21,298 nt of DNA, from assembly GCA_000388065.2 (NCBI GenBank), contig KB932202.1, one strand, 5' to 3'. Numbering within the stretch: position 1 is the first letter of the stretch; every line of letters starts with the position of its first letter. Position numbers and translations under genes: made by a program. This stretch comes from Fonticula alba ATCC 38817. Taxonomy: Eukaryota > Protista > Nucleariida. Below are positions 133 through 20,944 of the stretch, piece by piece. The notes under the pieces are model-generated. The model had not been told where the DNA came from. It saw nothing but the letters and a program-made list of their open reading frames with translations, and did not search any database.

Positions 133-3100
133 TCAGAGGGCGCTGTGCTCCGGCGGGACGTACGAGGGGTTCTTCTTCAGAAGGATGATGCCCTCCAGCA
201 GGGAGGACACCGGGATGTACTCCTCGGAGGCCAGCTCGGCCCGCTCGCCGGACGCCACCAGGACCGGGGTCTTGTGAGTCTGGAAGCCGGCGATGGCCTT
301 CGGCCGGCCGGCCTGAGCCACGGTGTCCACGGCCTGGCCGACGCGCACCGGGACCTCCAGCGGTGAAAGCGACTCCGCATCGAGGGTGATGAGCATGCGC
401 GGGCGCATGGCCAGCGACAGCATCATCAGCAGGTGGGGGTACTTGCCGAAAATAGCTGGCGAGGGGGACAAGTGCGCACACAGACAGACACACACACCCA
501 GGGGCAGGAGGGAAGCGACAGGGAGAAGAGGAGGGTCAGGAGACGGGAAGAAGGACACCCAGATCCGGGATTGCATAAACCAGGGCATGTGTGGGTGTGG
601 GCGGGAGAGGGACAAGCGAAGGAGGGCACGACCAAAAAAAAAAGAGGAGCAACGAGGGAAGGAGGTTCTCCCCTTCGCCGCCGGCTCTTCCGCAGAAAAA
701 AGAAGAAAAAAACACGCACTGTTATCGGGCTGGTTGACGGCCAGCAGCGCGGTCATCAGACCACCGACCGCCGCCGGGGAGAGGATCGACCCACCGCCGC
801 TGCCACCACCATGACGCATCATCACCGGGCAGATGGTGATCAGGCCCTTGCCCATGTGCAGGAGACCCTGGGCAATGCGTACGCACTGGACCCCGGTGCT
901 CGGGCTCTGGTAGTACCCCACCAGCTGGCGGAGGATCTGCGCAATACGGGCATTGTTGGTCCCGGCGCCGATCATCCCCAGGGAGAAGGTGGCCGCATAC
1001 CCGACGGACAGGTCATCATCGTGCGAGTAGCGCGACAGCGACTCGATGACGGCGATGTCCCGCGGGTCCGACGCGTGGATGAGCGAAATGGCCAGCGGCA
1101 CGGCACGACGCGCATCCGGCGACCCGTACTGCATGATGTGCCCGAACATGCGCAGGGACATCTCCACGCCGATGCGCTCGCCCATGGCAATCAGACCGAT
1201 GGCCAAAGTGGCGAAGGCCTGGTGCGGGTGCGACGGGGCCTCGGCATCATCATCGCCATCGCCATCGCTGCCCTGGGCATCGGCCGCGGCGGCCGCCGGG
1301 TCGATCCCCCGGGTCAGCGACTGGAAGTCCAGCAGGAACTTGCGTGTCGAGTCGCCGGCAGGCGCCTCGTCATTGAGCTCCAGCTCCTCATCCAGCAGCT
1401 CGCCAAACAGCTTGCGCTCCCGGGGCTGGACATTCCGGCTGTTGGAGACGGCCTGCTGCAAGCGGGCCGTGATGGAGGCCGGCTCCTCCGAGCCGGCATC
1501 CTCCTCATCGGAGTCCGGCACATCGGTCACCTGGGCACCGGCAGCGGTGCTCTTGGCCGGAGTGGTGGACTCGGCACCGGCGGCAGCCTCGGTGGCCGCG
1601 GCCATGGCCGCCTCCTCGGCCTCCTCGGCCTCCTCGGCCTCGGCGGTGGCCGCAGCAGCGGCCCCCTCCTTGGGAGCCGGGGTCAGAGGCTCGGTCAGCA
1701 TGTGCAGAAGCTGCTGGATTTGCAAGACATTGCCCGTGCCGGCGTACGCGCATCCCGGCACCAGGGCCTGGATCATGCGCATGAGCTCCTTATCGCTGAG
1801 GGCCTTGGCCACCTCGATGATGCTACGGGCCTTCTCCTGCTGGCCAAGCAGCAGCAACGCCAGACCCAGCACCAGGAAGTGCGAGCACGGGTCCGAGGAG
1901 AGGGCAGCACCGCCGGGGGCCGCGGCCGTCGGGCCGGTGCACGCGGAAGCCTGCTGGTCGCGGCAGATCAGCGCATCCAGGAAGGCAGCGATGGACTCGC
2001 CATCGGCCGTGCCGGCCTGCACGAGACCCAGAGCCAGGCCGGCGAAGCAGCACAAATCGAAGGGCTGCGACGGGTCGGCCAGGATGTTGCACAGGAGGTC
2101 GGCCACATCCGGCCGCCCGGAGCCGGAATACGCCATGCCCAGGGCCAGGACCGCCGACCGGACCACCTGCGGGTCATCGCTCTCCAGATAGCCACTCAGC
2201 ATCAGGAAAAGGATGTCCATCTGGTGGCGGACATTGGAGCTAACCAGCCCCAGGCCAAAGACCGCGCCCTCGGACATGTCACCGGTCAGCAGCGGATCCA
2301 GCAGGGCCACACCGGCATCGATGTCCCACATGGACAGCATGCCGAGCGCCGCGGCGACAATGGTCCGCGCGGCCGGCTGGTTGCCCAGGTGCAGGTTGTT
2401 GTAGGGCAGGGTGCGGGCCCCGCGCGGGGTGACCCCCAGCGACAGGTCGCTCAGGTCCTGGCCGACCAGATACCGGTCGCTCTGGAAGCCGGCATTGACG
2501 AAGGCCGACACAAAGGCATTCACCACGGTCGGGACATTGGCCGTGGAGGAGGCCCGCTGCTGCGTCTCCAGGTGGACCTTGAAAATGTCCTCCGGGCTCT
2601 TGGCCTCCAGGACCTCGAGCTCCTGGGCCAACTTCAGGAAGTGCTTGGTCTGGTGGCTGTTGTTCAGGCTGTCGGTGAGCTCCTGCAGCTCGGCCTCATC
2701 GACCATGGCAGCCAGGCCGGCCTCCACGCCGGCCGTGCCGCACGGCAGCTCCGACAGGACGTCCACCTGCATGCTGCCCAGCATGAGGGCCATCTGCCGG
2801 CGAGTGGACTGGTCGGCGGACGCATCGAGGAAGGTCTTGCGCACGAGCAGCGGGTCCTGCAGGCGCACCGCCACCACCAGCGCATCGCACAGGCGCCCCT
2901 GCGACATGAAGATGGTGTAGACCGAGCGAAGGACCATGCTGTCCTCGGGGTCGGGGAGGTAGTCGACGCAGCTATTCCAAACGGACGGCGAGGAGGACGG
3001 GGGGGAGGGGGAGGGCGGGGAGGGCGGGGAGGCCGGGGAGGGTGGGGAGGGCGGGGAGGGTGAGGAGGGCGGGGAGGGTGAGGAGGGCGAGGAGAGAAGT

Positions 3101-4674
3101 CGAGATGGAGCCAATTGCTGGCGAGTCAGCCAAGCTGAGGGAAGTGGTAGGAGAACACTGGCAGGGAGGGAGGGGGAGGGGAAGGGGGGGGGGGGGGCAG
3201 CCGAGTGGAAGCCCGCAACCAGGCACCCACACACGGGACAGGGCGTCTGTATGGGCATCAGAGCACCCGAACCAGACTGGCAAGTGCATGCGAACGCACC
3301 TGATCAGGTAGTTGCAGACCCGGTCGCAGTTGATCCGGTCCACGAAGGGCTCGAGCAGCTCCAGCGACTCGAGCTCCATCAGCAGGTCACAGGCGTCCAC
3401 CTCGGCATTGTGCGACATGCAGTAGGGAACAATGTCGCGTGCCAACTTCAGCAGGTCCTCGGCCTCGACCTTGAGGTTGCCCTCGACGTCCATCTGGTCG
3501 AAGCCATCGTCCTCCGTGGCCTCACCGTGGAGCTGGTCGAAGCGATGGGTGTACTCGTCGATGATCTCGTTCATCAGGAAGCTGGAGCGGTGGTGGCGGT
3601 AGCGGTGGCGGTGGCGGTGGTGGAGGGCAAAGGAACGGGCGAAGGGAGCAGGGAGAAGGTCAGGGTGGCAGAAGGTAGGGGAGAGAGGCGTGAGTGGTCT
3701 TGGGGCTTTGGCACGCACCGAATGTACTCGTGACCCCACTCGGCCAGGGCCTTGCCGGTGGCATCACCGACGGTGCCCTCCAGGCGATAGTGCAGCACCA
3801 GACGCGCCTCCGGCTCGCCGGAGATCATGGACACGAAGGACAGGATATCGGCAAAGTCCACCTGATGCCATGAGCAAGGACGGGTTAGTGAGGGGGGGGA
3901 GGGAGGGAGGGAGGGGGGGGGGGAGGGAACGAGCGGCCATGGACGAGGGCAAAGGCGGCACCCAGAGGGTGGGAGCGAGGGCGGAGAGGAACGGAGAGGA
4001 GGGCGGGGGGGGCAGGTGAAACGACGCACGCCGAGGCCGACAGCCCAGCACGACTTGGTCAGGCTGGAGCTCCCGAGCGCGTCGGCCGACTTCCAGGTCT
4101 TGTAGACCTGGGTCAGGCCAGTGTAGAACTTGAGGAGAAACTTGAGGGGGTTCGAGCCGGCACTGACGGAGGACCCGCTGGTCGCCGAAGACCCGGCCGC
4201 CGTGGTGGGCGCATCAGACTTCTTGCCGGCCTTGCCGGAGCCGGCCTTGGTGGAGGAGGTGAGCTCCGTGTGGGAGGACCGCGAGCAGAGCAACTCACGC
4301 AGGCGCTTCACGGCCACGGTGACCGCCTGGAGATCAACCGACTCCGGGGCCGGCTCCTCGGGCTCAAAGTCCTCGACTGCCTCGAGGGCACCGTCGACGG
4401 ACTTCAGCAGGACCATAACCTGCCGCTCGACGTCAAGGCGCAGAAGGCGATCCTCCTCGGCAGGGGACTGTGTGCGTGTGAGATGGCGGCAAGGTGATGT
4501 CAGTCGGGCTCTGGGGGGGGGGGGGCGGGGGCGGGGGCGGGGGCGGGGGGCGGGGGCGTGGGGACGCGGCTGCCGAGAACGCACCAGCTTGGAGGAGGTA
4601 GGCCCCTTGAGGATGGAGGAGCGGGAGGGAGCGACACCCTTGGACGGGGCGGGGGCGGGCTTCGCAGTAGCCAT
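133..4674 (-). CDS. RPN1: 26S proteasome regulatory subunit RPN1/PSMD2, 6 exons, about 1175 aa
   Basis: Exons (minus): 4674-4585, 4467-4030, 3861-3719, 3581-3300, 2971-720, 455-133. Total 3528 nt, in frame, ending in TGA. All five donors are GTGCGT; acceptors are CAG/TAG with CTRAC-type branch sites visible in introns 1-3. The spliced protein has Rpn1 motifs: PLKFL, DFADILS, EWGHEYIR, HNAEVDACDLLMELE, SCVDYLPDPED, PC-repeat helices, YAGTGNVLQIQQLL, IGLIAMGERIGVEMSLRMFGH, GTNNARIAQILRQL, VRIAQGLLHMGKG, PVRVGQAVDTVAQAGRPKAIAGFQTHKTPVL, GERAELA. The exon 2 donor (4029) is the least certain boundary. Confidence 0.96.
2997..3091. repeat. Degenerate 9-bp G-rich minisatellite (GAGGGCGGG variants, about 9 copies) in RPN1 intron 4
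   Basis: Read directly at 3011-3091: gagggcggg gagggcggg gaggccggg gagggtggg gagggcggg gagggtgag gagggcggg gagggtgag gagggcgag, preceded by a G-rich run. Confidence 0.85.
4513..4557. repeat. G13 run plus (GGGGGC)n in RPN1 intron 1
   Basis: Read directly: a G run followed by five GGGGG(G)C units. Confidence 0.9.
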
Positions 4675-6343: not shown

Positions 6344-6683
6344 NNNNNNNNNNNNNNNNNNNNNNNNNNNNNNNNNNNNNNNNNNNNNNNNNNNNNNNNN
6401 NNNNNNNNNNNNNNNNNNNNNNNNNNNNNNNNNNNNNNNNNNNNNNNNNNNNNNNNNNNNNNNNNNNNNNNNNNNNNNNNNNNNNNNNNNNNNNNNNNNN
6501 NNNNNNNNNNNNNNNNNNNNNNNNNNNNNNNNNNNNNNNNNNNNNNNNNNNNNNNNNNNNNNNNNNNNNNNNNNNNNNNNNNNNNNNNNNNNNNNNNNNN
6601 NNNNNNNNNNNNNNNNNNNNNNNNNNNNNNNNNNNNNNNNNNNNNNNNNNNNNNNNNNNNNNNNNNNNNNNNNNNNNNNNNNN
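6344..6683. other. Assembly gap (340 N)
   Basis: Run of N immediately upstream of the TatD gene. Confidence 1.
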
Positions 6684-6761: not shown

Positions 6762-9176
6762 ATGTTTGGTGCCCTCCTGCGCTCCCCCCTCGCCGCTCTT
6801 CCCCTGCAGCACACTCCTGCTCCCGTCCGCCTGGCCGCCACCGCCGCCGCCGTCTCCGCCGTTCGCCAGAAGAGCACCCAGGTCCCGGAGCCCGCAACCA
6901 AGAAGCGTCGCTCCAAGAAGTCTCTCCTTCCGGAGGCGGTCTCCACCACCCCCATCACCTACCTCTTCAGCAGCAACCAGGGATCCTCGTCGCTGGTCTC
7001 GTCTGGACGCGTGGCTACTACCTCGAAGACCCGCAAGGAGCGCCAGCCGATTTTCCCTGCGCCCCTCGCCGCCGGCCAACAGCAGCAGCCCACCAATACC
7101 GCCCCTGGCTCGGTCCCCTGGTTCATTAATCCCGCAGCCTCAATGACCACCCCCCGCGGCGCGAACAACAATCCCGCCAAGCCCAGCGACAAGGGCCATC
7201 CCGCTGGTGCCGAGGTGCCCTTCCCCCCGGCCAAGCCGGGGGTGGATTTTGTCGGTATGACCCCTGTACACAACTATTCCCCCCCCCCCCCCCCTTTCTT
7301 TTCCAAGCTGACACGCGCGCACGTCAACACGCCCAGACATCGGTGTCAACCTCTGTGACCCGATGTTCCGCGGCCTCTATCGCGATCGGCCCTATCACCA
7401 GGACGATTTGGCCCAGGTGCTGGAACGAGGCTGGGCGTCTGGTGTCCGACGCATGATCTCCACCTCAGGTCGGTGGTCCGAGCTGATTGAGTCCCTGCGT
7501 CTCTGCCAGGATGACGGTATGTCTCCTTCCTTTCCGCCCTCCACATCTAGAGGAACGCCAGGCTGGCGGGGGCGGGGGGGGGGGGGGGGGAGGGGGGATG
7601 TGACATCCCGCGCGAGGCGCTGTGGAGTCATCTAGTCAGGCCGCGATCCGTGGAAATCCTCTGCGACTAATGGACAATGCAATTCCCAAAAGCCCGACTT
7701 GTCACGACGGCTGGTGTGCATCCTACCCGCACGTCCGAGATGCTGGAGCCAGCCCTGGACCGCTTGGCCGCGGAGCCGCTGAATATGCATGGCATCTTCC
7801 CTGGCCCCTATCAGCCCGAGGCGCTGGAGGCATTCGCCAATCTGGACACGTACAGCGAAGCCGATCGGGTGGATCAATACATCAAGGCCCTCAGGGCCAT
7901 CCTCAAGGAGGACGCCCGTCAGGCGGCTGTCCGGCCGAATGGCTCGCGCAAGATCGTCGCGATTGGCGAGTGTGGTCTCGGTACATCTTCTCGCCCGTGC
8001 ACATTCATCTGCCCGCCCCCTCCGCCACATCCGCCCCGGTGCCTGCGACAGTTGGCTTACGCTGCCCTAACTGCTGCCCTCTCTCTGTTCATCTGCTGCT
8101 TTGGCAGACTATGATCGCCTGGAGTTCACCCCGAAGGATGTCCAGATCAAGTGCGTGTGCCAGTCCCCGGGGGCGGNNNNNNNNNNNNNNNNNNNNNNNN
8201 NNNNNNNNNNNNNNNNNNNNNNNNNNNNNNNNNNNNNNNNNNNNNNNNNNNNNNNNNNNNNNNNNNNNNNNNNNNNNNNNNNNNNNNNNNNNNNNNNNNN
8301 NNNNNNGGGGGGGGGATCGGACCTTTCATTGAAATGGGCTCAGATACAGATGCTGACAGCTGGCTGCTCTGCCCTGCGCGAGTGTAGGATGTTCAAACGC
8401 CACTTCCAGCTGGCCGACAGCACCGGGCTGCCGATGTTCCTGCACAACCGCAACACCGGCTCGGACTTTTACGACCTCGTGCGCAAGTATCGGAAGCAGA
8501 TTCGCGGCGGCGCTGTGGTGCACTCCTTCACCGGGACCCACGAAGAGCTGCAGATGGCTCTGGAGCTGGACCTCTTCGTGGGCATCAATGGCTGGTACGT
8601 GTGTGGCCTTGCCTTGCGCGATTTGTGTGCCTCTCCTCTTTTTCTTTTTCTTTTTTTTTTTGCATCCCTCTCCCCTCGCCTGCCCATGTCTTACCTGATG
8701 TTGGGGAAACACGCGCACACGCACACATCCACAGCTCCCTCAAGACTCAGGAGAACCTGGATGTGGTGAAGGCCATCCCGGTGGAGCGACTTCTCCTGGA
8801 AACCGATGGTCCCTGGTGCACCATTCGGCCATCGCATGCCGGGCATGGCTTCCTGCGGACCAAGTACCCGGAGTCTCGGCGCGACCGGCACAAGTCGCAC
8901 ACCCTGGTCAAGGATCGCGCCGAGCCGTGCCACATGAACTCGGTGCTGGAAGTAGTGACGGCGGTCCGGTATCCGGGCGGCCCGGCTGCCTTCGCCGCGC
9001 TGTCGGATGCCGAGAAGGATCTGGCCGAGCGCCGCCTGGCTGAGCGGGTGTACCGGAACTCGCTGCAGCTCTTCTTCCCGGAGGAGTATGCCCGGCTGCG
9101 GGCCGAGGAGGAGAAGCTGTCCACCGAGGGCATCGAGGGCCAGGTGACCGTGATCTCCATCGAGGACAGTGCCTGA
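6762..9176 (+). CDS. TATDN1: TatD-family nuclease, eukaryotic TATDN1 type, with an N-terminal extension of about 160 aa; 6 exons, about 550 aa
   Basis: Exons: 6762-7254, 7337-7516, 7693-7980, 8108-8150, 8388-8594, 8735-9176. Total 1653 nt, in frame. Donors GTATGA, GTATGT, GTACAT, GTGCGT, GTACGT. Spliced motifs: DIGVNLCDPMFRGLY, TTAGVHPTR, VAIGECGLDYDRLEF, LPMFLHNRN, VVHSFTG, VGINGCSLKT, LLLETDGPWC, RAEPCHM. The E, H, H and ETD catalytic positions of TATDN1 are present. The start is uncertain because a CAG acceptor-like site lies 5 nt before the ATG and a gap is just upstream. Confidence 0.93.
8177..8306. other. Assembly gap (130 N) inside TatD intron 4
   Basis: N run flanked by G-rich sequence. 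The flanking exons join in frame (AA|G, giving IK-MFKRHF), so no coding exon needs to lie in the gap. Confidence 1.
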
Positions 9177-15774: not shown

Positions 15775-16752
15775 CCTATGCCTGCCTCCCCCACGCTCAA
15801 TACACGCCACATATACATGTCTCTCCTCTCCCCTGGCAAGACTGTCGATGTGAGCGCGCCCCTCTCCTGGGTGGCGCAGAAAAGGGGGCGCCCTCGGGGG
15901 GGACGTGCGCATGCGCAGGCCGGTGTCTCGCGCCGTCCTTTGCTGATCCTTCCCACCGGCTGGGGCCTGCGCTCCTCCTCCTCCCCTGGGCAGCCGACCG
16001 GGAGGCGCCTTTCGGCGTCTGCCTTTTTCACAAGCGGGCGTCGGCGGCACAAGCACATCCGTTGGCATGTCCCAGGGGAAGGCCATGGGCCATGTTGACC
16101 CGAGACCAGGGCCGCCCAGCATCGGGGGACCTGCCAGGCCGGCGGCCGGGGGAGATTAGAGCCGCGGCCGGGGCGTGGGCCAGAAGGCCAGGCTCTGGCT
16201 TCCGGTGCCAGGCGGTCTTTTTTTTGGCGGCGGCGGCGGCGGTGGCAGCGGCGGCGGCGTAGTCGCCACTCTGAGCACCAAGCTGGCGTGCGGAATGATA
16301 GTCTGCCTGCTGGGGGGGGGGGGCGCACGTGCGGGATCTCCGGCCCGCAAGGCTTACCTGTGCTGGGATCCGCACCACGCGCGATCCCGCGCACGCAATC
16401 TCCTCCGCAGGACAAGACCCAACTCCCCCGCCCCTCCCTCTCAGGACACGCAAGCCTTTTTTCAGATGGCCAGCCACGCTGGAGCTCCCGTCCCCGCCTC
16501 GATATTCCCCTCCCTCTCCCCTTTGCGGCCCTTTCACAGCCCCCGCCAGCCCCTCCATCGTCTCCCTGCCTTTCCGCGAACATACGCACGCATCCCTCCT
16601 CCGCCCCCCTCCACACATACATACATCACCCTCCTCCCTTGCCCACCCCTCTCCCTCCCCTCGTCGCCTTGGGTGCGTGCGTGCACGACAACTTGCGCGT
16701 GTCAACGGTCCCGCTCTCCCTGCGATCGGCAGTTCAGCGCCTTTCCTCCAAT

Positions 16753-19583
16753 ATGGTGACCTTGCCGGCCGAGGGTGCCTGGCCCCATGGGTGGTTTCCC
16801 GGATTGTGGCGCGCAACCTCTGCCGATGCCGAGATCCCGGCTCAGCAGCCGGACTACACCCCGGCCGTGGTCCGGCACTTTAGGGGCCAGCCTATGATGG
16901 CGCCAGGCGATCCTATCCAGGAGAACGCCCAGGCCGACAAGACCGCGGCCATGGTGCATGGGTTCCTGGCTGGCCAGCCGGGGCTGGTTTCGCCTGCTTC
17001 GATTGAGACCCTGTCCTCTGCGCTGACTGGGCCCCAGAGAGCGCCGTTTATTCTGCATGCCGGCCCCTGTGCTGAGATGTTTGCCGATCAAGATGGCCAG
17101 GGCCCCAGCAGTGCCAGCGGCCTCGTCGAGTGCCGGGCCACCCCGGAGTCCGGGTGTGGAAGCTGCCGCACTGGCGAGTGCCCTGTGGCATATGCACAGC
17201 ACCTCAACCGGGTGTCAGATGCTTTTGTTGCCATGTCCCCCGGTCACTCTGATGCCGGGGTTGTTCGGATCTGGCGCGGCGCTGGCCAGGTACGTACCAA
17301 CAGGTGCCCTGCCTGTGGTCCTATGCTGTCCCCTCCCTGTGCACCAGCTCCTCTGACCCGTAAGACCCACACACACACACACATGTATACATATATGCGC
17401 ATGCATGTTTGCATGTATACATATATGCGCATGCATGTTTGCATGTGCACATTCATGCATGGCTTGGATTGGTGTTGGCGTCGCAGTACGGCAAGCCACG
17501 CTCCTCTTGCTTCGAGCAGTCTCCCTTGACCGGTGAGCGGATACTTTCCTATCGGTAAGTGCATGCACACACACACACACATGACAATGTCACAGTCACA
17601 CCTCCTGCAACATCCCTCCCCCTCCCCCCTCAGACTGACTCTCTTTCCCTTGCGACGTCCGCAGGGGCGATATGATCAACTCCGATGCTCCATGCGGTGC
17701 GGCGCGGTCGCACGATCCTCGGCGCCTGGTCCGGTGCGTGCCCCTCCGTACGCACGCCTTGGGGACATTGATTAGCTAGGGGACTGACATTCTGCCGGGC
17801 ACCCTAAGTGCGCACGAGGCAGCCCGCGGAGCCTTGGATCGCCTCGGTGCCCATGGATACCTTTGGAGCCCGAATGACGCTGACAGCCACCAGGCCATCT
17901 TCACCTCGCACGAGGCGCTGGTCCTTTCGTATGAGGAGTCCCAGACGCGCGTGGAGCAATGGGCCTCGGGTGGCCAGCTGGCCGCGGCCTACGCCACCAG
18001 CGGACACCTGGTGTGGGTGGGCGACCGGACTCGAGACCACCCTGGCACGGGGCCACGGCAGCCTAGTGGCCATCTCCTCTGGGCCCAGGGGGTCCGTAAT
18101 CCCCTGGGGATCAAGCTGTCGGCCAGGGTGTCGCCGGAGGCGCTGGTTTTCGCCATCCGATCGGGGCTCGGCTGCGAGCAGCTCTTTCGCCCGGCGCCCG
18201 GGGTGGCGGCCTCATCCCAAGCAAATGACCCCCTACCTGGGCGCGCGGTGCTGATCATCGCACGATATGGGGCCCGCGCGGCCCCGCGAGCCGTGGGGCA
18301 GCACATTCGGATCCTCCGTGCGGCCGGGCTTATGCCGGGCGACTCCGGCCCGATGGATGGGGATGGTCGCATCTTTGCCCAGGCCCATGCAGCAGCGGCA
18401 GCGGTCCTGGGCGCCGGCCCGCGGACCAACCTCCTGGGGGACGCCCCGTCGGGGGCATTTGGCGAGCTGCTCGGTGGGGCCTTCCGTGGGTGGGCCCCTT
18501 CGGGCCGGGAGGTGGCGGACATTGCACGCGTGGCAGCCCACCGGGCGGGGGAGCTGTGTGCCGTTCCCGACGCAGCCCTGGAGGTGGATGCCCTTTTGGG
18601 GCGGGCCCTGCCTCGGGGGACCTCCCTCGCCGCCTGGCCGGCACCCCTCCTTAGGGCTCTTGGCCAGCATGTGGATGAGGTGGCCCGGGCGGCGGTGGCC
18701 GCCGCACGCGAGAACCTGGCTGACAGTGCTGAGGAAGCGCCCCTCGAAAGTCCGGACCCCTGGCTGCTGCCTTGTCGTTGTCGTTCCTGCGCTCGGGCCC
18801 GGGTCCACTGGCTGGCGGACCCGATGCACGGGAACACGGTGTCCATTTCTCCCCGAGTGGACCCGGGGGTTTTGGCCCCGATGAGCGACCCGGCCACAGC
18901 TGGGGAGGCCGTTCGGTGGGCCGTCGGCCCTGGGTCTCCGAGCGCCCCCTCCAGCCCGATGGAACTCCCGCTGGCGGAGGAGCCGGCTCCGCAGGCGGGG
19001 GTGCCAACAGCGGCATGCCGGGGGTGTGCCCCGCCGCCGGATACCTTCCGGCCGAAAACCCGACACCTGCGCGCGCTGGCGGCCGAAGTGTGTGCGCAGC
19101 ACATCGGCCTGGGGCCCGGGGCCTCCCTCGGGGGACTACACATGGAGGTGGCCCCGCGCCAAGTCAGCGGTATGTGTCTCCCTCCCCATCATCGGCCTCT
19201 GGTGGCCATGCCTCTTTCTCCCTCTGCCCCTGTTTGTCTGTCTGGCCTCTTTCGCTGCCCGATCCTCCCCTTGCGCATTGCTGACATGGCGCCGTCTGCC
19301 CTGTGCTTTCGACCATCCATGCGCTCCCCACCTCCCCCTCCCCCTCATGTCCCGCTCGGGCGCAGAGTGTGTGGACGACACGAACGAGCAGAACACCGCG
19401 GCGGCGGTATTTTCACAGGCCTGGCGGGCAGCCGCCCGGCATGGCTCACAGTCGTGTGTCGCCTGCAATGGACAGGCCTCGCCCTACCTGACGGCGTGCG
19501 ATCCGCGACTGTCCGCCGGGCAGTCTGTCTTCCTGGCGGAGATGACCGCCCGGCTACTGAGTCTCGGGCCGCTGGCCCGGTGA
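16753..19583 (+). CDS. Type II (AroAII) 3-deoxy-D-arabino-heptulosonate 7-phosphate synthase with large insertions; 5 exons, about 750 aa
   Basis: Exons: 16753-17289, 17487-17554, 17665-17733, 17809-19169, 19366-19583. Total 2253 nt, in frame, ending in TGA. Donors GTACGT, GTAAGT, GTGCGT, GTATGT. Type II motifs appear in order after splicing: W-x-P-x-x-W-R...AQQPDY, FILHAGPCAEMF, VVRIWRGAGQ|YGKPRSS, LSYR|GDMIN, DPRR, FTSHEALVLSYE, LVWVGDRTR, NPLGIKL, IIARYG, WLADPMHGNT, KTR, GGLHMEV, S|ECV, YLTACDPRL. The start codon is provisional and an upstream exon cannot be excluded. Confidence 0.92.
17369..17460. repeat. (CA)n followed by a 30-bp tandem repeat (2 perfect copies and 1 degenerate) in DAHP synthase intron 1
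   Basis: CATGTATACATATATGCGCATGCATGTTTG at 17382-17411 and 17412-17441, then the degenerate CATGTGCACATTCATGCAT at 17442-17460. Confidence 0.9.
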
Positions 19584-19774
19584 GCCCGCCTGTGGCGGGG
19601 TACGTCGCGTGCAAAATAAACACCCAGGCGTACAAACATGTATCTGCGCATGGCTACTGCAGTACAGGGAGATAACAGCATCTGGCTCTGGGGCGTGTCT
19701 TTTCTTTTTCTATTTTCCCCCGCCTCCGGGCCGGGGCGGTGGTGGCGGTGGTAGTCATGGTCACACAGATGTAC

Positions 19775-19948
19775 CTAATTACCGACGAAGTCGTGAAGAT
19801 GACAGGACTCCCGCATGACGGTCAGCATGACGGAGGGGCGAGTCGCGGGCGGTTTCGCCGAGTCGGTGCTCTCCTCCTCCGGCTTCTGAGACGGGCGAGC
19901 CGAGGTGCCGAACAGAGTGAATGCAATGTGCACGCTGGGCTTGTCGCT

Positions 19949-19982
<34 letters not shown>

Positions 19983-20944
19983 AAAAAAACCCGGCAGAAC
20001 TTGCCGAGGAGGCGCACCGGCACGCCACAAGTATTTCCTTCGTCGGACGACTGAATTTCAACCTGCCCTCCGCAGATCCGAACCGCCTGCTGCTCCTTGG
20101 TGAAGGTGTGGCCGGTGAGCGGGGTGNNNNNNNNNNNNNNNNNNNNNNNNNNNNNNNNNNNNNNNNNNNNNNNNNNNNNNNNNNNNNNNNNNNNNNNNNN
20201 NNNNNNNNNNNNNNNNNNNNNNNNNNNNNNNNNNNNNNNNNNNNNNNNNNNNNNNNNNNNNNNNNNNNNNNNNNNNNNNNNNNNNNNNNNNNNNNNNNNN
20301 NNNNNNNNNNNNNNNNNNNNNNNNNNNNNNNNNNNNNNNNNNNNNNNNNNNNNNNNNNNNNNNNNNNNNNNNNNNNNNNNNNNNNNNNNNNNNNNNNNNN
20401 NNNNNNNNNNNNNNNNNNNNNNNNNNNNNNNNNNNNNNNNNNNNNNNNNNNNNNNNNNNNNNNNNNNNNNNNNNNNNNNNNNNNNNNNNNNNNNNNNNNN
20501 NNNNNNNNNNNNNNNNNNNNNNNNNNNNNNNNNNNNNNNNNNNNNNNNNNNNNNNNNNNNNNNNNNNNNNNNNNNNNNNNNNNNNNNNNNNNNNNNNNNN
20601 NNNNNNNNNNNNNNNNNNNNNNNNNNNNNNNNNNNNNNNNNNNNNNNNNNNNNNNNNNNNNNNNNNNNNNNNNGGGGAGGGGACATACACATTCCGAGCG
20701 CCACAAGTGTGTGATATCGGGGCCGTTCAAATGGCCTCTCCGTTGCGTCGGCGACGAGACACACTCGGCCTGGGCTCCACGCATGATCGTCCTGCGGCCA
20801 CATCTCTCGAGCCCAGCCAGAGGCGGAGCCCGGGGCGAGCCACGCAGGTGCACATCCGTCGGCACTTGACGAGATAAGTACCCACCGATGGATCCAATTA
20901 AAGCCCTCAATTGGCTTGCACTCGAGAACAGCCTCCAAGGTCAT
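19775..20944 (-). CDS. Possible unknown multi-exon gene, interrupted by a gap
   Basis: ATG at 20944 with an in-frame stop just upstream. Complex, non-repetitive peptides on both sides of the gap are in the same frame, although the gap length is only an estimate. A phase-matched GT(20000)...CAG(19947) intron removes the poly-C tract and gives LLGN-DKPSVHIAFTLFG. An AAG acceptor at 20096 is preceded by CTCAC. No family was recognised. Confidence 0.35.
20127..20673. other. Assembly gap (547 N)
   Basis: N run flanked by G-rich sequence on both sides. Confidence 1.

Follow-up and report, generated by a model that had tools for sequence, protein, structure and literature searches.

A divergent four-intron gene of Fonticula alba that probably encodes a class II DAHP synthase without helices alpha2a and alpha2b

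How does an enzyme form met in bacterial secondary metabolism come to be encoded by an intron-containing gene of an amoeboid eukaryote, and what does it do there? The question is raised by a stretch of 21,298 nucleotides (nt) from the slime-mould-like Fonticula alba ATCC 38817 (assembly GCA_000388065.2, contig KB932202.1), referred to here as the window, in which positions 16753-19583 hold the gene H696_01550. [quoted passage not shown] To our knowledge, the short form of the class II enzyme, which lacks helices alpha2a and alpha2b, has been characterised so far only in bacterial secondary-metabolite clusters. We hold with good confidence that H696_01550 is a nuclear, expressed, four-intron gene for a highly divergent class II (PF01474) DAHP synthase of this short form. 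An earlier note, made from the letters of the window alone, had proposed such an enzyme and ascribed it to an old bacterial transfer. The architecture stands up to analysis; the transfer does not find the support it would need.

The gene model is the firmest part of the case. The five phase-compatible exons that the earlier note had joined into a type II DAHP synthase (Table 1) give a coding sequence of 2253 nt and a product of 750 amino acids (aa). Every residue of this translation agrees with the database protein F. alba H696_01550 (P0001 in our set), which is located on a 3.9-Mb scaffold, is called a 'hypothetical protein' at NCBI, and carries the automatic UniRef name phospho-2-dehydro-3-deoxyheptonate aldolase. 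Transcript evidence came from contigs of four small cDNA-type runs of 2012 (X1, X2 and X4 among them) placed on positions 16400-19900. The joints 17733/17809 and 19169/19366 are directly visible in these contigs. Exons 2, 3 and 4 are brought together in a single contig, and the nine loose letters it carries before 17484 match the end of exon 1. All four introns, and with them the junctions predicted from sequence, are confirmed by spliced cDNA contigs, and the gene is expressed. Intron 3 lies about 12-15 codons upstream of the would-be alpha2a/alpha2b site; the in-frame stop noticed there earlier is real, and stops occur in all three of its frames.

The GC content of the window is 61-72%, and long chance open reading frames (ORFs) lie in many frames, including one of 384 aa that runs antisense over exon 4. 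Because long ORFs arise by chance at 72% GC, exon 4 was checked for hidden introns. These were ruled out by the continuity of the RNA contigs, which cover the exon from 17808 to 19168 without a break except for an unbridged 17905-17911, and by the coding-like GC of its inserted segments at codon positions 1, 2 and 3 (0.78/0.64/0.75, versus 0.51-0.64 GC in introns). Bacterial contamination was also ruled out, by the four confirmed spliceosomal introns and the 3.9-Mb scaffold.

The class II assignment rests on both profile and residues. The Pfam profile PF01474 covers the whole protein in six stretches with 178.9 bits (E 1.6e-52), well above its cut-off of 27. All four metal ligands are present: C106 in GPCAE (104-108), H565 in DPMHGN (562-567), E671 in LHME (668-671) and D724 in CDPRL (723-727). 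Residues that hold phosphoenolpyruvate (PEP) and erythrose 4-phosphate (E4P) are present as well (R175, K182-P-R-S185, E260 of TSHE at 257-260, R298-R300, K327 and R377). With RGAGQYGKPRS, YRGDMIN, DPRRLVR, WVGDRTR, GIK and IARYG also found, every ligand and substrate motif that had been listed from the letters was located in the translation. In an alignment of 98 sequences, columns were counted as conserved when kept in at least 85% of the 97 homologues; Fonticula retains 68 of 75 such columns, all catalytic residues among them. On a comparable count of 73 columns it deviates at 5, where ordinary members have a median of 3 and a maximum of 12. That this number falls within the ordinary range is the main argument that the Fonticula protein is still an enzyme.

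The feature that sets the protein apart is the loop between alpha2 and beta3. In type IIA DAHP synthases this loop contains helices alpha2a and alpha2b (residues 179-225 in PA2843, PDB 5UXM), whereas type IIB enzymes such as PhzC/PA1901 (PDB 6BMC) keep the N-terminal extension and omit both helices (Sterritt et al. 2018, PMC6435475). In Fonticula, 38 residues lie from D219 to T257, which is exactly the count given in the earlier note. When the protein is aligned to Mycobacterium tuberculosis (Mtb) AroG with phmmer, query residue 237 meets residue 185 and query residue 254 meets residue 244, leaving about 42 residues missing. PhzC (6BMC) aligns in one stretch without a large gap, query 199-300 to chain 128-220. 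In an L-INS-i alignment of 186 sequences, the spacing from DPRRLVR to TSHE is 31 residues in Fonticula, 15-45 in short forms and about 75 in long forms, with a few sequences in between; the long-loop group includes most of the stramenopile eukaryotic enzymes.

Structure agrees with sequence on this point. An alignment-based AlphaFold model (predicted template modelling score 0.76; predicted local distance difference test (pLDDT) above 90 in the core) has a helix at 221-239, a short coil, and a strand at 255-260. Foldseek, with the template modelling (TM) score normalised by the hit, gives 0.81-0.82 for PhzC structures, including the lowest root-mean-square deviation (3.6 A), versus 0.70-0.76 for IIA structures. 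The N-terminal extension by which type IIB enzymes are also defined is present, with W14-x-P-x-x-W-R20, QQP-x-Y and model helices at 54-74 and 81-92. Alpha2a and alpha2b are absent, as the earlier note had held, and the PhzC-like architecture is confirmed by the structure alignments, the 186-sequence alignment and the AlphaFold model. A further short loop was seen among the stramenopiles: the enzyme of Aureococcus anophagefferens (P0458) has a loop of 40 residues though nested among relatives with 75-residue loops. Either the gene model is at fault here, or the loop may truly have been shortened a second time in eukaryotes.

About 335 residues (45% of the length) lie in lineage-specific inserts, defined as segments occupied in fewer than 10% of homologues (36-59, 122-151, 345-362, 398-553, 573-588, 592-640 and 694-715), hence a product of 750 aa rather than about 400. 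No known domain was found in the inserts with Pfam at E values up to 5, or in the ESM Atlas searched by features and by structure. Of the 19 cysteines, 13 fall in inserts, and four separate inserts carry one CxxC motif each. When residues were shuffled among the inserts, four CxxC-bearing inserts arose in 1 of 20,000 trials. It is tempting to speculate that the primary shikimate entry step of Fonticula is run by a short-form enzyme whose lost allosteric helices were replaced by an eight-cysteine control site, built from the four CxxC motifs and acting by metal binding or as a redox switch; we consider this unlikely.

What would such an enzyme do? The protein keeps its (beta/alpha)8 core and N-terminal extension along with the metal ligands and the PEP and E4P residues, and the enzyme most likely condenses PEP with E4P at the start of the shikimate route. 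Since helices alpha2a and alpha2b are missing, the tryptophan site and the tetramer interface of the long-form (IIA) enzymes would not be formed. Control by aromatic amino acids, if there is any, would have to use another route, and by likeness to PhzC the enzyme may be insensitive to them. There is no N-terminal targeting extension ahead of the conserved W-x-P-x-x-W-R start motif, which makes a cytosolic location likely. A published survey reported no biosynthetic gene clusters in Fonticula (PMC13322982), which argues against an analogy with secondary metabolism. Fonticula transcripts include folB, folK and folP, genes of the pterin branch of folate synthesis (PMC4224340), and these fit a need for chorismate-derived para-aminobenzoate. 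A role in primary metabolism, supplying chorismate, would be more plausible than a secondary role like that of PhzC.

The origin of the gene is a separate matter. The loop columns were taken out before tree building; the careful tree (LG+C20) has 65 rows. Eukaryotes are represented in it by stramenopiles, while fungal, oomycete and plant class II sequences stand outside it; a homology search for these gave stramenopiles only, and no fungi were named in two cluster look-ups. FastTree and quick IQ-TREE trees were set aside in favour of the careful tree, as the quick search had missed a better tree. The end branch of Fonticula measures 2.4-2.9 substitutions per site in every tree built, and no supported clade includes it. 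The earlier note had looked to a loop-masked maximum-likelihood tree to tell a bacterial origin from a eukaryotic one: the tree supports no bacterial clade for the gene, and it does not support nesting among eukaryotic type IIA enzymes either.

On the careful tree the loop state changes 14 times, and at least 7 of the changes are forced by well-supported branches. Gain or loss of alpha2a/alpha2b thus looks recurrent, and the indel by itself is no marker of descent. The short forms are not one clade, and in the sample analysed IIA and IIB look like recurrent architectures rather than two clean lineages. Among bacteria, short, intermediate and long loops are interleaved on well-supported branches, as in P0331/P0262, P0244/P0378/P0278 and P0380/P0379.

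There are two ways in which the gene may have acquired its short loop. The first, to which we give tentative credence at somewhat short of an even chance, is vertical descent of a holomycotan class II gene whose evolution in Fonticula's GC-rich genome was very fast, and which lost alpha2a/alpha2b independently and gained inserts elsewhere. Class II enzymes occur in Neurospora (P80576), in a Basidiomycota cluster and in oomycetes. Loss of the helices recurs on the tree, and the gene has many other indels. In the approximately unbiased (AU) test on the careful tree, grouping Fonticula with six stramenopile long forms was not rejected, with a log-likelihood (lnL) difference of 1.4 and p 0.445. 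In the larger quick tree the eukaryote-constrained arrangement was better than the free search, and the top core identity, 39%, is to a long form. Against this, no eukaryotic sequence is specifically close to the gene. Stramenopile enzymes are plastid-type and not the relevant comparison, which would be the fungal sequences that stand outside the tree.

The second, to which we give slightly less credence, is that an ancestor of Fonticula took up a bacterial short-form (IIB, secondary-metabolism type) gene, and that the four spliceosomal introns and the GC-rich inserts were gained afterwards. Fonticula feeds on bacteria. An exhaustive phmmer search of 1.84 billion representatives returned nothing below E 1e-30 except the protein itself. 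The match that follows (P0241, 2.6e-27) lies in a bacterial contig with biosynthetic genes, and no eukaryotic orthologue is better than E 1e-27. Most top matches are short forms of 358-420 aa, aligned across query 167-340 without a large gap. However, the gap between the best short form (112 bits) and the best long form (99 bits) is small. Loop-masked hidden Markov models (HMMs) put the short-form model about 10 bits ahead of the long-form model for Fonticula, but the same margin occurs in divergent long and intermediate forms (-20 to +27). The comparison was dropped as a classifier, the margin being uninformative for sequences so divergent.

The trees and motifs lend this transfer no more help. 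No short-form clade holds Fonticula in the tree. In the AU test, a grouping with the short-form clade of eight members to which the best match belongs was not rejected (lnL difference 3.0, p 0.398), and neither was the eukaryotic long-form sister group, in a tree without fungal, oomycete or plant sequences. With Fonticula unplaced, the old bacterial transfer that the earlier note had put forward is not borne out. The note had also seen the wording of PhzC in several motifs. The segment beside the deletion, SYRGDMIN..AP.AAR.HDP.RLVRA, differs little from that of the long form Mtb AroG, and the motifs cited are common to short and long forms. Its suggestion of a mosaic protein, drawn from the N-terminal W-x-P-x-x-W-R, is also unsupported, since this motif occurs in both classes (30 of the 92 short forms and 48 of the 81 long ones) and is hence uninformative. 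The data do not place the gene: its short loop may have come with the gene from a short-form donor, or a eukaryotic gene in fast evolution may have suffered the deletion independently.

Several observations weigh against a working DAHP synthase of primary metabolism. The NCBIfam equivalog TIGR01358 gives 150.5 bits, below its cut-off of 614.7. With family HMMs built here, Fonticula scores about 215 bits versus at least 340 for every other member scored; these two shortfalls together would allow for a changed activity. Residue D105 of GGDCAE is replaced by Pro, and the insert regions mostly have low confidence in the AlphaFold model (pLDDT below 50). The literature gave nothing usable on the remaining shikimate enzymes of Fonticula, whose proteome itself was not searched. 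The TIGR01358 shortfall is a matter of divergence and inserts, not of missing motifs; judged by sequence, this is the most divergent putative class II DAHP synthase seen in our analysis. That the protein is a DAHP synthase no longer, but a pseudo-enzyme or one with a changed substrate (aminoDAHP-synthase-like, for example) kept for another role, would suit the low scores, the large share of inserts, and the annotation of some short-form relatives as aminoDAHP synthases (P0146), but this is very unlikely given that none of the four metal ligands or the PEP/E4P motifs has been lost, that its column deviations stay within the range of bona fide members, that the gene is expressed and correctly spliced, and that the published survey reported no biosynthetic clusters in Fonticula.

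The surroundings of this probable DAHP synthase gene are not those of a biosynthetic gene cluster. Upstream lie genes for RPN1, TatD, RPL37e and SF3A2, in keeping with the earlier description of an intron-containing eukaryotic gene among housekeeping genes. Downstream are a small gene of unknown kind, a gene for a Myb protein, and a cysteine-synthase-like gene. The last, a PALP gene, was considered as a tryptophan synthase, which its cysteine-synthase-like character ruled out. Assembly gaps (runs of N) occupy 6344-6683, 8177-8306 and 20127-20673 of the window and none falls in the DAHP synthase gene; ORFs that run across 20127-20673 are artefacts.

Table 1. Positions in the window of the H696_01550 exons and introns, its loop, inserts and CxxC motifs, and the RPN1 gene
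Feature	Position (strand)	Residues or length	Content and evidence
Exon 1	16753..17289 (+)	aa 1-179	First in-frame ATG; RNA contig 16722-16886; N-terminal extension with W14-x-P-x-x-W-R20, GPCAE (ligand C106), insert 122-151 (30 aa, C135-G-S-C138), RIWRGAGQ
Intron 1	17290..17486 (+)	197 nt	GT..AG; X4 contig loose end GGCGCTGGC at 17484 equals exon 1 end; (CA)8 run, then perfect 30-nt tandem duplication (17383, 17413), within 17368-17442
Exon 2	17487..17554 (+)	aa 180-202 (partial codon)	YGKPRS, the E4P motif; X4 contig
Intron 2	17555..17664 (+)	110 nt	GT..AG; X4 contig joins 17553 to 17664; (CA)8 run at 17566-17581
Exon 3	17665..17733 (+)	aa 202-225	GDMIN...HDPRRLVR
Intron 3	17734..17808 (+)	75 nt	GT..AG; joint in X2 and X4 contigs
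Exon 4	17809..19169 (+)	aa 225-679	Continuous in RNA contigs; alpha2, short loop, TSHE, WVGDRTR, GIK (K327), IARYG (R377), 156-aa insert, DPMHGN (H565), 65-aa insert region, LHME (E671)
Short alpha2-beta3 loop	17852..17896 (+)	aa 240-254	Site of alpha2a/alpha2b (about 42 more residues) in long forms
Insert	18326..18793 (+)	aa 398-553	156 aa, Ala/Pro/Gly/Arg-rich; ends C547-R-C549-R-S-C552; low-confidence predicted helices
Inserts	18851..19054 (+)	aa 573-588 and 592-640	C628-R-G-C631
Intron 4	19170..19365 (+)	196 nt	GT..AG; joint in X1, X2 and X4 contigs
Exon 5	19366..19583 (+)	aa 679-750 and stop	ECV, insert 694-715 (C709-V-A-C712), CDPRL (ligand D724)
CxxC motifs	17155-17166, 18779-18790, 19016-19027, 19455-19466	aa 135-138, 549-552, 628-631, 709-712	
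RPN1 gene (proteasome subunit)	133-4674 (-)		At least 2 coding pieces (Pfam RPN1_N, PC_rep, RPN1_C)

A short form in a eukaryote, with housekeeping genes for neighbours and in the amoeboid relative that stands closest to fungi, would mean that primary metabolism too can use this architecture or has re-used it. The apparent repeated gain or loss of alpha2a/alpha2b in the sample also warns against reading gene transfer out of the indel by itself. An evolutionary claim made from a single, very divergent orphan of unplaced origin carries little weight for now. The Fonticula gene adds a new eukaryotic variant to a known enzyme family, and its interest lies mainly in the short loop in a probable primary-metabolism setting and in the cysteine-bearing inserts.

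Four groups of known proteins come close to it, each in a different respect. Bacterial short forms that carry a fused AMP-binding, chorismate mutase or anthranilate-synthase-like domain (P0241, P0273, P0307 and P0354) share the short loop, reach the top phmmer scores, and are 40-44% identical over the matched stretches. Unlike Fonticula, they are bacterial, are fused to or clustered with secondary-metabolism genes, and have none of the Fonticula inserts. In P0241 itself, a partial AMP-binding domain is joined to a short-form DAHP synthase in one protein, encoded on a metagenome contig (L002:1-22211). Its neighbours there are two AMP-binding genes and genes for a carrier protein, a prenyltransferase/cyclase, a short-chain dehydrogenase/reductase, an ATP-grasp enzyme, an amidase and a major facilitator superfamily transporter; the locus is a probable uncharacterised bacterial biosynthetic cluster.

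The eukaryotic relatives, plant DHS1/2, the stramenopile plastid enzymes and Neurospora crassa P80576, belong to the same family, are encoded by nuclear intron-containing genes, and match the fold at E 1e-25. The stramenopile enzymes sampled have the 75-residue loop, P0458 being the exception, and plant and algal enzymes carry N-terminal targeting extensions where the Fonticula protein begins with the conserved W-x-P-x-x-W-R.

Of the solved structures, Mtb AroG (2B7O) is the best pairwise sequence match to the whole protein, with 93 bits and the same catalytic residues, followed by P. aeruginosa PA2843 at 84 bits and PhzC at 83. AroG and PA2843 are both type IIA, and their alpha2a and alpha2b form the tryptophan site and the minor tetramer interface, at the very place where Fonticula is short.

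Finally, PhzC (PaeDAH7PS-PA1901), the founding type IIB enzyme, is the closest in architecture, with the same short loop, the one-stretch alignment and the best hit-normalised TM score. It scores below AroG over the whole protein, and the trees hold no supported clade of Fonticula with short forms. PhzC is a bacterial enzyme of 405 aa, encoded in the phzA-G operon and used in secondary metabolism; the Fonticula gene has introns and housekeeping neighbours, and its much longer product owes its length to the inserts and their four CxxC motifs.

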